A DNA stretch of 64,000 nucleotides. It comes from Podarcis erhardii (lineage: Eukaryota). This document shows, piece after piece, positions 56,798-64,000 of this stretch. Position 1 is the first letter of the stretch. Each line of letters opens with the position of its first letter. Where the stretch lies: NCBI GenBank assembly GCA_964252035.1, contig OZ176201.1, one strand, 5' to 3'. Both the position numbers and the translations under genes were made by a program. The notes beneath the pieces are model-generated. The model saw only the letters and a program-made list of their open reading frames with translations, made no database searches and was not told where the DNA came from.

Positions 56798-56903
56798 TCA
56801 GTTGTAAAGATCATCATCGCCCTCCTCTTGGAAGAGGCTTCCTTGGCCACTGCTGCTTCCACTGTTTCCCTCTCCACTGGTGCTCTGCTTTCCAGATGGA
56901 AAC
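56798..56903 (-). CDS. VCP-like: VCP/p97 paralog, last coding exon (FPSGKQSTSGEGNSGSSSGQGSLFQEEGDDDLYN*)
   Basis: Acceptor ctccacag|G. 106 nt, as recalled for human VCP exon 17. p97-type DDDLY(X) terminus and TGA stop. Confidence 0.92.
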
Positions 56904-57732
56904 CTGTGGAGATAAAGAATGGCCTTGGTTTCATGCAAGAGAAAGTTGGGTTATTCTGTTTTATGAATGTGGGCACTGATCTGGTTGTACTCTACATAAA
57001 CAAGATGTTAAAATAATGTGGATGTGATGCACATCCCAATGCACATAAAAACCCATCCCGTTTAAAGTAATGCAATATGGAGGGACTGTATCTGAATGCA
57101 CATCTAATTTATACCTGCAATTCAGAGTCTGCAGGTACCGCCTGTGGATCTCCATAGCTGGGTCAGGGCAATGCTGTTTTTGAATGGTCTTTTGTTTATT
57201 TTAGCTAGTATGTGTGTGTTTAATTCTATTGCACTTCTTTTGAATGGTACCCTTTATTTTGTATATGGAATTTAACATCTTACACTAACTTGAGAGCCCT
57301 CACTGGGTCATACACTTAATAATAAAAAGTATTATTTTCAGTTGGTTGGGATGATGAAATGCAACCCTCGGAAATCTTGATAGTACTGTTATTATTTAAT
57401 TTATTTAATTTGTTAGTCACTTTATCCTGCCCAAGGCAACCCAAAGCAACTTACAAAACTTAGCAGAGTGACAAGGTAGATAGTAGAGAGTCAAGCTACA
57501 TAGTAGAGTCAAGCTGAGGTTCCTGTATCTTGTTTCAAAGAACAAATTTCCCCCTATCCTAGGAAAAGGGAACCTAGGAATGTTGTTGAACTTCAGCCTT
57601 CACTAATCCCAGCCATGGGAGTTCTGGTCAAACAACATCTGTGGGGCCAAGTTCCTCACCCAGGCCCTGTCCACTGCACTGAAGTGAAACTCTAGCTTGG
57701 GGCAGAGGAAGCAAAAAGTTCTCCAACATTAC

Positions 57733-57884
57733 CTGAAGTTGCCAAAGCCACGGCTTTGCTGTAATGTTTGGGCAAACATCTCATACTTGCGTATGTCATT
57801 ATCACTGACAGAGCGGCGTGCAAAGCGCATTGCTTCCTCAAAGTGATCGCGTCGGATCTCTGGCACGGGGTCATAATCATCATC
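57733..57884 (-). CDS. VCP-like: VCP/p97 paralog exon ([51 protein letters not shown])
   Basis: Near-identical to the p97 C-terminal helix region. AG/GT boundaries, 152 nt. Confidence 0.96.
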
Positions 57885-58099
57885 CTATCACAAAAGGGCA
57901 GGGGGGGGAATGTTGTTGAGCTGCATCCTTACAAGCACCAAAGCCCTGTGAGATCAATGCAATTGAGGAGACTGTGGCCCCACGATGGGGGGGTGGCCAT
58001 AAAGTTCCCAGAATACTATGCAGGGAAGAGCAGGGCATGAGGCAATGGAAGGAATCCCGCCTGGCCCTGTTGGGATGTGGGGAAGTCTCACTACCATAC

Positions 58100-58258
58100 C
58101 ATGGCGGCACATTTATGACGCTGACGCTCCCGTTCTGCCTTGATCTCCATCTCGATGGCCTCACGGATGGCCAGTTTGCAGGCACGCTGGCATATTTCAG
58201 TGAGGTCAGCACCTGAGAAGCCATGTGTGATCTTGGCCAAGTAATTCAAATCCACATC
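58100..58258 (-). CDS. VCP-like: VCP/p97 paralog exon ([53 protein letters not shown])
   Basis: D2 lid [14 protein letters not shown] motif. AG/GT boundaries, 159 nt. Confidence 0.96.
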
Positions 58259-58489
58259 CTGTTGGAGAAAGATAACATGGGCTTACTGGAAAGGTCCTGC
58301 CAACACAGAAAAAAAACATTCCCTGTTTGAAGAAGAGAAACATACCTTTCGTGCAATACATCCTCCTCTGTTGGAAGACAGTGGTGGTGGAGGCCAGGAT
58401 GCGGTCTCAGAATACTATCCCCATTTCTACTATCTACTTCCCATGCTGTTTCAGTTCCCCTCCTGTGTTCAGTCCTGGCTTTCACTGAC

Positions 58490-58619
58490 CTTGGCGATAG
58501 GTGACTTTCGCAAGTTGGCTTGGAGAATAGCTATGCGAGACTTGTCATCGGGCAAGGGTATGTAGATGAGCTGATCCAGGCGTCCTGGACGAAGGATGGC
58601 TGGGTCAATGATGTCTGGT
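58490..58619 (-). CDS. VCP-like: VCP/p97 paralog exon ([43 protein letters not shown])
   Basis: D2 second region of homology with arginine fingers (LRPGR). AG/GT boundaries, 130 nt. Confidence 0.97.
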
Positions 58620-61639: not shown

Positions 61640-61762
61640 CTGCACCAGCTCTTGTAGTTCACGCTTGACTTCCTGCAGGCCTCCAATATCTTCCCAGCAG
61701 ACCTGTGGAACCTCCACTACAGTCTCGCGAAGTGCTGATGGGTTGCTCTGTCCAAGGGCCCA
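61640..61762 (-). CDS. VCP-like: VCP/p97 paralog exon ([41 protein letters not shown])
   Basis: D1-D2 linker. 123 nt, AG/GT boundaries. Confidence 0.97.
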
Positions 61763-62434
61763 CTACAAAGCAGAAGAGAACATGAAGCATTGAGGTTCTG
61801 TGCCTCCCTGGACAGAGGTAGGAGGTTCCTTCCTTGCTTCCCATAGAATCCTCCAAGAGCAATCCAGAAACACCAGGGCACTTTGGCCAGGCAGGCAGGC
61901 GGGCAAGTGAGCAAGTATGTGGGCAACCAAAGCCAGTGAGGAGGAGGGAACCAGAGGTGCACGAAGGCAGGAAGGCACAGTGGAAAAGGGAAGGTCTAAG
62001 TCACTCCGCATTGTGGAAGACAGGAGAAAAAAAGCCTGCATTTTGAAGTGCCGTCTTCCTTTTCTGGCTTCCCAGCACACCAGCAGTGGTGGAGGGAAGT
62101 GGGGGAGAGGACAAAGTGGAGAAAGAAGCTTTGCTCTGACACTCACTCACTCTCTCTCACACAAACATACATACACAAAACCTGCTGCAGCTGAAGAAAG
62201 CACAAGAAAGAAGCCCACATTTTCAACGCTGGCTTTTTCCTCCTGTCTCAAGCAGCAGCAGCAACAGTGGGATCAACAGGGAGACGGGGGGTGTAAAGGG
62301 AGTGGGGTTAGCAAGGGGGAAGTGGGTTTGGTAGGGCCACTGGGGTTGGCGAACAAAGTGAACAGGGGTAACAGCTATATTATATATATTCAGCTTAAGA
62401 GCTCTTGCTATTGGATTGCCAAGAGCTGGCCCAC

Positions 62435-62599
62435 CTGGAAGTCATCCATAGTGACAGCCATGGAATTGAGGATGTCAGCATCAATTGTGTCGTCCTCCAG
62501 GTCGATGACGCTCATCTTCTTGCGGATGGCTTGGAGCGCTGCCTCAGAACACAGAGCTGCCAGGTCAGCACCCACGTGCCCATGCGTTTCGTTGGCCAC
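62435..62599 (-). CDS. VCP-like: VCP/p97 paralog exon ([28 protein letters not shown]...VTMDDFQ)
   Basis: D1 lid. 165 nt, AG/GT boundaries. Confidence 0.97.
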
Positions 62600-63461
62600 C
62601 TGTAACCACAAACTGTGTGTTGGAGGGGGCTTTCCATGGGGTGTCATTCCCTAGGACAGTTCCTTAAGGGTTCCTGAAGCAGCTTCTAAGGAAAGTGAGC
62701 CTCTCCTAATGATGCAAAGAGCCTTTCCTCGTAGCTAGAGGTGTAATCAGCTGTCCCAGACAATAGACTGCTGGCAAACTTGCTCTTTTAGCACTGAACA
62801 AACACCAATCTGCAGAAAACACGTTTGCCGTCTGCTCCATTTCAGCGCTAAACTGCAGGCTTCCTCAAGGGGCAAACGCAGTGGGGCAAAAGGAAATGTG
62901 GATGAGTCCTCAGTTGACCTCAGGCAAATGTAGAGCACCCTGCATTCTATAGAGGGAACTTTCTGGAACTGCCATTCTACTCTTCATAGCCAGGCTCTGA
63001 GCAAGGATAAGCACACCCCGACAAGCACACACAGGCAATCCCCAAAGCATGCTGCTGTCTCCTTAGGTTTCCTGCATACCCTGTTATCCACTAGTACCTA
63101 TGTACCTCAGAACCTGAGAGCTACTATAATTCATGTGCATCACATCTTTGCACCTAGGGCCATGGCTATTAAGCCCCATCCTCCCCCCCAACCTGGGTCA
63201 CATATGAGGTGCGTCACTTGATGTTCAACCTCTTGGTCAGTGTGGGAAGTGGCACCCTTGAAAGGCATGGCCTGAGGTGAGATGGAGTGTTCCATCTATT
63301 GTGTGTGACCTGTGACAGCTCATTAAGACATGTAGCAGAAATCAAGAGATATGTGTTCCTGCCTAATGCAGCCCTTACCAAGCTCTAAAGAGCCCATGCA
63401 TCTCTGAGTGTCCCTTGGATCCACCCTGCCTCCCTATAGGCCTCCATTGCCTGCTCCTCAC

Positions 63462-63574
63462 CTTCTCCAGGTCCACATCGTCGGCCAGTTTCATGTTCTT
63501 GGTGTGTATCTGCAGGATTTCCAGCCTTCCCACAGAATCTGGGATCCCAATGTCAATTTCTCGGTCAAAGCGCC
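63462..63574 (-). CDS. VCP-like: VCP/p97 paralog exon ([38 protein letters not shown])
   Basis: D1 arginine-finger region. 113 nt, AG/GT boundaries. Confidence 0.97.
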
Positions 63575-63917
63575 CTGCAGAGGATAAAGGAGCACTGAGC
63601 CCAGAACTACCAAAAACAACACTCCTTCATCCTCATAACTATCATATCTTGCAGACGAGGGAACAATGAATGGGAAGTGGGTCTAAGTAGTTAGGATGTG
63701 TCCCTGGAGATGGGTTGGCACCTGGGAAGGTTAAGGCCCCCATGGATTAAACAAGAGAGCTAGAAACTTGTCTCTTGTTACAGCCAGCATCTTTAGGAGC
63801 AACTTGTGACAATGGGACTCTGGTATTTTCCTCAATGGACTTAAGGCTCACAACCAAAGGAGGAGAAGGAGGAGAGTCCCTAGGGCAGATGGATGAGAAT
63901 GCAGGACAGTCTCCTAC

Positions 63918-64000
63918 CAAAACGGCGCAGTGCAGGATCGATGCTGTTGGGCCGATTCGTAGCCGCCATGACTATCACATGTGAGCGCTGCTTCAGGCCA
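63918..64000 (-). CDS. VCP-like: VCP/p97 paralog exon, partial at window edge ([27 protein letters not shown])
   Basis: D1 second region of homology. Donor TTTG|gtagga. The gene continues beyond the window. Confidence 0.96.

Follow-up and report, generated by a model that had tools for sequence, protein, structure and literature searches.

A second p97/VCP-type gene in the lizard Podarcis erhardii is very probably the orthologue of zebrafish zgc:136908 and an early-vertebrate duplicate

The ATPase p97/VCP is a disease gene product and a drug target whose gene is usually regarded as single-copy and near-invariant in vertebrates. Its acidic C-terminal tail, with Leu-Tyr-X at the end, is where PUB/PUL-domain adaptors dock. 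Outside the vertebrates, duplicates of the homologous Cdc48 gene have precedents with partly redundant functions, namely cdc-48.1 and cdc-48.2 of Caenorhabditis elegans and CDC48A-C of Arabidopsis. Here we describe a VCP-like gene at one end of a 64,000-nucleotide stretch of the Podarcis erhardii genome (contig OZ176201.1 of assembly GCA_964252035.1; hereafter the window). Our analyses indicate that this is very probably a functional second p97/VCP gene, the orthologue of zebrafish zgc:136908, which arose as an early-vertebrate duplicate (most likely through whole-genome duplication) and was kept in a neighbourhood with GIPC1, the EP1 receptor gene and TECR. The gene is not a discovery: RefSeq and UniProt already list it, in zebrafish under the provisional name zgc:136908. 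With the gene models already public, what we add is their evolutionary placement.

Six-frame reading, peptide anchoring and exact splicing placed 10 exons of the VCP-like gene on the minus strand, spanning 56801-63999 and followed by a TGA stop at 56798-56800:

63918-63999, minus strand: exon encoding the end of D1 (28 protein letters), cut on its 5′ side by the window edge; donor GTAGGA at 63917
63462-63574, minus strand: exon encoding the D1 arginine-finger region (37 protein letters); acceptor CTGCAG, donor GTGAGG
62435-62599, minus strand: exon encoding the D1 lid helices (13 protein letters...TMDDFQ; from peptide anchoring and splicing)
61640-61762, minus strand: exon encoding the D1-D2 linker and the start of D2 (from peptide anchoring and splicing)
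61264-61476, minus strand: exon E, with the D2 Walker A motif (GPPGCGKT) and the D2 pore loop (MWFGESE) (from splicing and motifs)
60191-60369, minus strand: exon with the D2 Walker B motif (FFDELD) and sensor-1 (GATNR) (from splicing and motifs)
58490-58619, minus strand: exon with the D2 arginine fingers (LRPGRLD) (from splicing and motifs)
58100-58258, minus strand: exon H, D2 lid, with the clade-typical REAIE and EIKAER (from splicing and motifs)
57733-57884, minus strand: exon of 50 protein letters (from splicing and motifs)
56798-56903, minus strand: last exon, with a Gly/Ser-rich tail ending in EEGDDDLYN and the TGA stop at 56798-56800 (from splicing and motifs)

All nine introns run from GT to AG, and the spliced frame of 1419 nucleotides (473 codons) contains no in-frame stop. 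The window carries the rear 60% of the gene, which covers D2 in full, the C-terminal tail and the last ~130 residues of D1, among them the D1 arginine fingers. Orthologues, including the Podarcis muralis protein, whose overlap with the window product is 99% identical, contain CDC48_N, CDC48_2 and two AAA plus lid domains. We note that in a related genome (a Logan contig, the source of a fragment designated P0001) no stop interrupts the frame across the intron separating exons H and I, and the gene caller read through it; the same intron in the window (57885-58099) contains a stop.

Judged by its motifs, the product is a p97/VCP-type (Cdc48) type II AAA+ ATPase. Exon E alone matches residues 495-565 of human p97 D2 at 66 of 71 positions (E=1e-64), and the following elements were located in the spliced protein, with positions given in canonical numbering:

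Position 358: D1 arginine fingers, RRFGRFD
Position 518: D2 Walker A, GPPGCGKT
Position 550: D2 pore loop with the aromatic pair Trp551-Phe552, MWFGESE
Position 575: D2 Walker B, FFDELD
Position 621: sensor-1, GATNRPD
Position 634: D2 arginine fingers, LRPGRLD
C terminus: the Leu-Tyr-X end, DDDLYN

The acidic tail keeps the Leu and the Tyr and has Asn as its final residue in place of Gly. Aligned with canonical lacertid VCP, the product shows 72 mismatches in 472 residues (84.7% identity). An earlier note on this DNA had described ten canonically spliced, stop-free VCP exons, intact Walker A and B motifs and pore loop in D2, intact arginine fingers in D1 and D2, an intact LY-X end and about 70 differences in ~470 residues; exact splicing (nine GT..AG introns and a 473-residue frame), the motifs as located and the measured count bear out each part of this description.

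Relatives of the gene were reached through several rounds of searching. Exon H, compared with cluster representatives by HMMER, retrieved almost only exon-sized fragments and no full-length relative. Fragment P0001 is 96% identical to exon H, and several further fragments share its REAIE variant; one matching fragment was traced to a 751-bp metagenome contig and is uninformative. Used as a query, P0001 retrieved partial fish proteins that are nearer to the window product than to canonical VCP. A profile (A4) made from a cleaned subset of these sequences, comprising fragments and six window exons (MAFFT run on separate exons confuses the homologous D1 and D2 rings), brought in long proteins of fishes and sharks that carry the name 'zgc:136908' or 'transitional endoplasmic reticulum ATPase-like'. 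Finally, the C-terminal 471 residues of a shark protein (P0271) retrieved full-length members in sharks, rays, bichir, sturgeon, gar and teleosts, as well as members in a caecilian, a newt, turtles, snakes and lizards. Identities to the window product are as follows:

Podarcis muralis XP_028573113.1: 472/473 (99.8%)
Anolis: 98% (over 439 residues)
Crotalus cluster: 96.8%
Turtles: 92%
Caecilian: 91%
Sharks: 89-90%
Ray-finned fishes including zgc:136908: about 88%

Cluster look-ups added coelacanth, lungfish and axolotl to the VCP-like members. They also list a canonical VCP of 806 residues for P. muralis (XP_028604013.1), P. lilfordi, Lacerta agilis and Zootoca vivipara, together with the VCP-like protein for P. 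muralis (XP_028573113.1/.2) and P. lilfordi. Within the genus of the window, two species have both genes. The near-complete match to P. muralis marks the window itself as DNA of a wall lizard or of a species very close to one.

Among the best 120 matches to P0271, ranked on the discriminating C-terminal half of the protein, mammals and birds were represented by canonical VCP only, and frogs and crocodilians by no match at all. This ranking agrees with loss of the VCP-like gene in mammals, birds, crocodilians and frogs and does not amount to proof of it. GC-rich microchromosome genes of birds and crocodilians are often missing from assemblies, which weakens the inference of loss in those two groups. 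The earlier note had called the gene absent from mammals and kept in reptiles. The first statement agrees with the lack of a mammalian copy among these 120 matches and rests on them and on established knowledge rather than on a genome search; the second holds for squamates and turtles and is too narrow, as most non-mammalian jawed vertebrates keep the gene.

We next consider the position of the gene among vertebrate VCP proteins. A quick tree of 42 proteins and a careful maximum-likelihood tree of 39 proteins (LG+C20+F+G4; support given as ultrafast bootstrap / Shimodaira-Hasegawa-like approximate likelihood-ratio test) agree in recovering a canonical VCP clade of mammals, bird, turtle, lizards, frog and teleosts (100/99). 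The VCP-like clade is sister to it (100/99), and each of the two clades is present in 100% of bootstrap trees. In the careful tree the window product pairs with P. muralis XP_028573113.2 inside the VCP-like clade. That clade follows the species tree, from chondrichthyans through ray-finned fishes, coelacanth and lungfish, and amphibians to turtles and squamates, and amphioxus, coral and rotifer fall outside both vertebrate clades (100/97). The placement of amphioxus outside both clades and of chondrichthyans within the VCP-like clade indicates that the duplication took place after the amphioxus split and is older than the jawed-vertebrate ancestor.

The two clades differ in their rate of change. 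Full-length VCP-like and canonical VCP proteins of lizards are 87.0% identical to each other, and canonical VCP of lizard and platypus are 99.3% identical. Between lizard and turtle, the VCP-like proteins are 93.9% identical and the canonical proteins 98.9%, with about five times as many differences in the former. On these alignments the VCP-like paralogue diverges faster than canonical VCP, yet is strongly constrained. There are 29 columns that separate the clades, all of them conservative exchanges; of the 18 that the window product covers, 17 show the VCP-like state. At many of these diagnostic sites, and over the whole tail, the VCP-like protein matches the state of amphioxus and coral, and canonical VCP has the derived one. 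Specifically, the sequences compare as follows:

REAIE in VCP-like, amphioxus and coral; RESIE in canonical VCP
A shared 10-residue segment in VCP-like, amphioxus and coral; EEDDPVPEIR in canonical VCP
GNFR in VCP-like, amphioxus and coral; GSFR in canonical VCP
Conserved PSQG absent in VCP-like, amphioxus and coral; PSQG in canonical VCP of tetrapods
EEGDDDLY followed by N, Q or S in VCP-like, amphioxus and coral; DNDDDLYG in canonical VCP

Two further genes in the window bear on the origin of the duplication:

52191..54116, plus strand: EP1-type prostanoid receptor gene (exon 1 at 52191-53018 with donor GTGAGT; exon 2 at 53832-54113; stop TAA)
5932..7107, plus strand: last three exons of a GIPC1-type gene (about 5932-6045, 6644-6724 and about 6950-7104; stop TAG)

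The best solved match of the receptor is EP1 (270 bits, versus 249 for FP), and the GH2 end of the GIPC gene is closest to GIPC1 (99 bits, versus 76 for GIPC2). The receptor gene and the VCP-like gene are convergent, tail to tail, with 2.7 kb between their stop codons. The same arrangement recurs in Chelonia mydas, Hemicordylus capensis and Rhinatrema bivittatum, where the VCP-like gene is followed, 2.6-3.3 kb downstream, by a convergent 7tm_1 gene; in Chelonia and Hemicordylus this gene is the orthologue of the EP1-type receptor of the window (80% identity). A TECR-type gene lies next downstream in tarpon, and a PGLS-type gene (Glucosamine_iso) next upstream in a shark. The human counterparts GIPC1, PTGER1, DNAJB1, TECR and PGLS are all located at 19p13.1, with PTGER1 abutting PKN1, and human canonical VCP lies at 9p13, adjoining FANCG and near DNAJB5. 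DNAJB1/4/5, GIPC1/2/3, PTGER1/PTGFR/TBXA2R and PKN1/2/3 form a four-fold paralogy group, the usual mark of the early genome duplications. These chromosome locations fit the known four-fold paralogy of DNAJB, GIPC and PKN and would support the reading of the two VCP genes as probable ohnologues, that is, as copies from a whole-genome duplication. The earlier note had spoken of a DNAJB-GIPC-prostanoid-receptor block; no DNAJB gene was found within the 64-kb window, which of this block holds only the GIPC1-type exons and the EP1-type receptor gene, and the DNAJB part of that statement must refer to DNA outside the window.

We note that in Hemicordylus capensis one record (CM050091.1, 429 Mb, locus L005) is given both for the VCP-like gene and for a member of the canonical VCP cluster (P0497). 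The two genes may therefore lie on one chromosome in that species, an arrangement compatible with an old duplication.

Taken together, we suggest that a single ancestral Cdc48/VCP gene would have been duplicated after the split from amphioxus and before the divergence of chondrichthyans and bony vertebrates, most likely in one of the two early vertebrate whole-genome duplications, and that the VCP-like copy would have resided in the GIPC1/EP1 receptor/TECR neighbourhood ever since. Several points weigh against this account or limit it. The N domain and the greater part of D1 are encoded past position 64,000 and are known solely from orthologues. The conservative nature of all 29 clade-diagnostic substitutions means that the sequence gives no sign of an altered mechanism. 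The sole hint of expression comes from several sequencing runs of related organisms, guessed to be RNA, in which 6-16% of the sampled words of a 1.9-kb stretch occur; exon G makes up 6.7% of that stretch. Lastly, cyclostomes and canonical chondrichthyan VCP are absent from the tree sample, so that the duplication is not tied to a particular round of genome duplication.

It is conceivable, although we consider it unlikely, that the ancient paralogue arose in the vertebrate stem through a small-scale (segmental or tandem) duplication instead. The tree by itself dates the duplication to the interval between amphioxus and the gnathostome ancestor, and the paralogy of the blocks on chromosomes 9 and 19 (DNAJB5 with DNAJB1, PKN3 with PKN1) is a matter of general knowledge. 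A small-scale event fits less well with the finding that the two copies occupy different conserved neighbourhoods, which by established knowledge belong to one four-fold paralogy group. The earlier note had proposed a whole-genome-duplication copy: the age implied by the tree fits that proposal, as does the resemblance of the neighbourhood to the 19p13.12-type block, and the choice of genome duplication over another early duplication is the part that we infer.

A gene that is conserved elsewhere could have fallen silent and begun to decay in lacertids. We rejected this notion of a young pseudogene, which we regard as very improbable, on the intact frame, the canonical splice sites, the intact motifs and a low ratio of nonsynonymous to synonymous substitution rates (dN/dS). 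Codon alignments taken from tblastn matches give a dN/dS of 0.030 for the comparison with a turtle, Chelonia (439 codons), and of 0.065 for that with another lizard, Hemicordylus (433 codons); these values uphold the purifying selection supposed in the earlier note. Further, the product differs from that of P. muralis at 1 of 473 residues, and the RNA-guessed runs of related organisms do hold words of the exon-bearing stretch. The functional second gene that we favour has been held under purifying selection since before sharks and bony vertebrates split.

A duplicate or retrocopy of canonical VCP made recently in squamates or sauropsids would have nothing but the similarity itself to recommend it, and is refuted almost beyond doubt by nine introns whose positions are shared with shark and tarpon (the exons of lizard, turtle, shark and tarpon begin and end at the same residues) and by the grouping of the gene with those of shark, fish, coelacanth, lungfish and amphibian, not with squamate canonical VCP (100/99). 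Nor is it at all credible that the window gene is the lizard's only VCP and a fast-evolving orthologue of the mammalian gene: taken alone, a full set of intact motifs and an identity of ~85% to canonical p97 would suit a divergent orthologue, but a canonical VCP, 99% identical to that of platypus, is present in P. muralis, P. lilfordi, Lacerta agilis and Zootoca vivipara, the window product belongs to the other clade, and the gene adjoins the EP1 receptor gene and GIPC1, whereas human canonical VCP adjoins FANCG near DNAJB5. The earlier note had expected that a true second gene would share its genome with a separate canonical VCP and would not nest within squamate canonical VCP; the canonical gene is present in P. 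muralis and P. lilfordi and the VCP-like genes form a sister clade, so that its observation is confirmed and its interpretation as a second VCP gene is supported.

By analogy with canonical p97, the VCP-like protein would form a double-ring hexamer, with D2 as the main site of ATP hydrolysis and a pore through which ubiquitylated substrates are threaded. The likeliest differences from canonical p97 would lie in regulation and in the choice of adaptors at the tail, with its ancestral EEGDDDLY-N/Q end and without PSQG, and the two genes probably differ in the place and timing of their expression. Two near-identical AAA+ subunits in one cell could build mixed rings, and at 87% identity mixed hexamers of the VCP-like protein with canonical p97 are possible.

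It is a tentative possibility, which we consider less likely than not, that most non-mammalian jawed vertebrates, including zebrafish, run two p97 segregases, either as mixed hexamers or with the second as a separate machine that has its own tail-binding adaptors or tissues. Were this so, loss-of-function and disease models made with zebrafish vcp would be partly buffered by zgc:136908, and mammals would have compressed two functions into one gene. Redundancy with zgc:136908 may affect zebrafish vcp phenotypes. Sharks, fishes, salamanders, caecilians, turtles and squamates have a second, strongly constrained copy of p97; none of the best 120 matches is a mammalian counterpart of it. Comparison of the tails also sorts features of canonical VCP into vertebrate innovations (the terminal Gly, the PSQG site and RESIE) and ancestral ones.

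The spacer between the GIPC1-type and EP1-type genes (7105-52190) comprises 45 kb of repeats and transposon remains; in human, GIPC1 and the EP1 receptor gene lie within a few kb of each other. Six long intergenic open reading frames in the window had no Pfam match. Observations made in these regions are as follows:

43358-44848, minus strand: two adjacent open reading frames of 206 and 274 residues (the second beginning MVCKACTETLRGW), with no Pfam match, which look like the remains of one broken transposon-type gene
15191-15658, minus strand: an open reading frame of 155 residues containing RRGRQRTRWLDSVLKATNMSLTKLREAAEDRSAW, with no Pfam match, which resembles the C-terminal end of ORF2 of an RTE/BovB-type long interspersed nuclear element, one of the abundant repeats of squamate genomes
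About 400-470: a (GT)n microsatellite, translating as VCVCVC...

Of the systems described so far, the zebrafish gene zgc:136908 and the RefSeq group 'transitional endoplasmic reticulum ATPase-like' are the same as the window gene in orthology group, diagnostic residues and neighbourhood, with no substantial difference. Within the group, the final residue is Gln in teleosts (-LYQ) and Asn in tetrapods and sharks (-LYN). Our literature searches found no article naming zgc:136908, pairing VCP with 'ohnolog' or dealing with a second zebrafish vcp. A protein named 'transitional endoplasmic reticulum ATPase-like' does appear in an icefish proteomics table and may belong to either clade.

The same database name is also carried by an unrelated gene. 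In chicken, 'transitional endoplasmic reticulum ATPase-like' is a W-linked gametologue with female-biased expression (PMC13594839). Like the VCP-like gene, it is a second VCP-type gene in a sauropsid under that name; however, it is a young sex-chromosome copy of canonical VCP and has no relation to the ancient paralogue. A partial Falco entry of this name is 97% identical to canonical VCP and falls outside the VCP-like clade. We considered the avian W gametologue as the identity of the window gene and rejected it, since it is a young copy of canonical VCP under the same name.

The Cdc48 duplicates of C. elegans and Arabidopsis are independent, lineage-specific events, unlike the vertebrate VCP-like gene. 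A further comparison is with canonical VCP/p97 itself (human VCP; structures such as 5FTK and 7LMY), with which the VCP-like gene shares its length and exon-level layout over the part seen. The D2 Walker A and B motifs, the pore loop, sensor-1, the arginine fingers of D1 and D2 and Tyr805 are identical in the two. They differ in that the VCP-like tail ends in -DDDLYN and the canonical tail in -DDDLYG, in that canonical VCP has EVEEDDPVPEIR where the VCP-like protein has another 11-residue stretch, in that the VCP-like protein is without the PSQG motif common to canonical VCPs of tetrapods, and in that the VCP-like locus, beside the EP1 receptor gene and GIPC1, is separate from that of canonical VCP.

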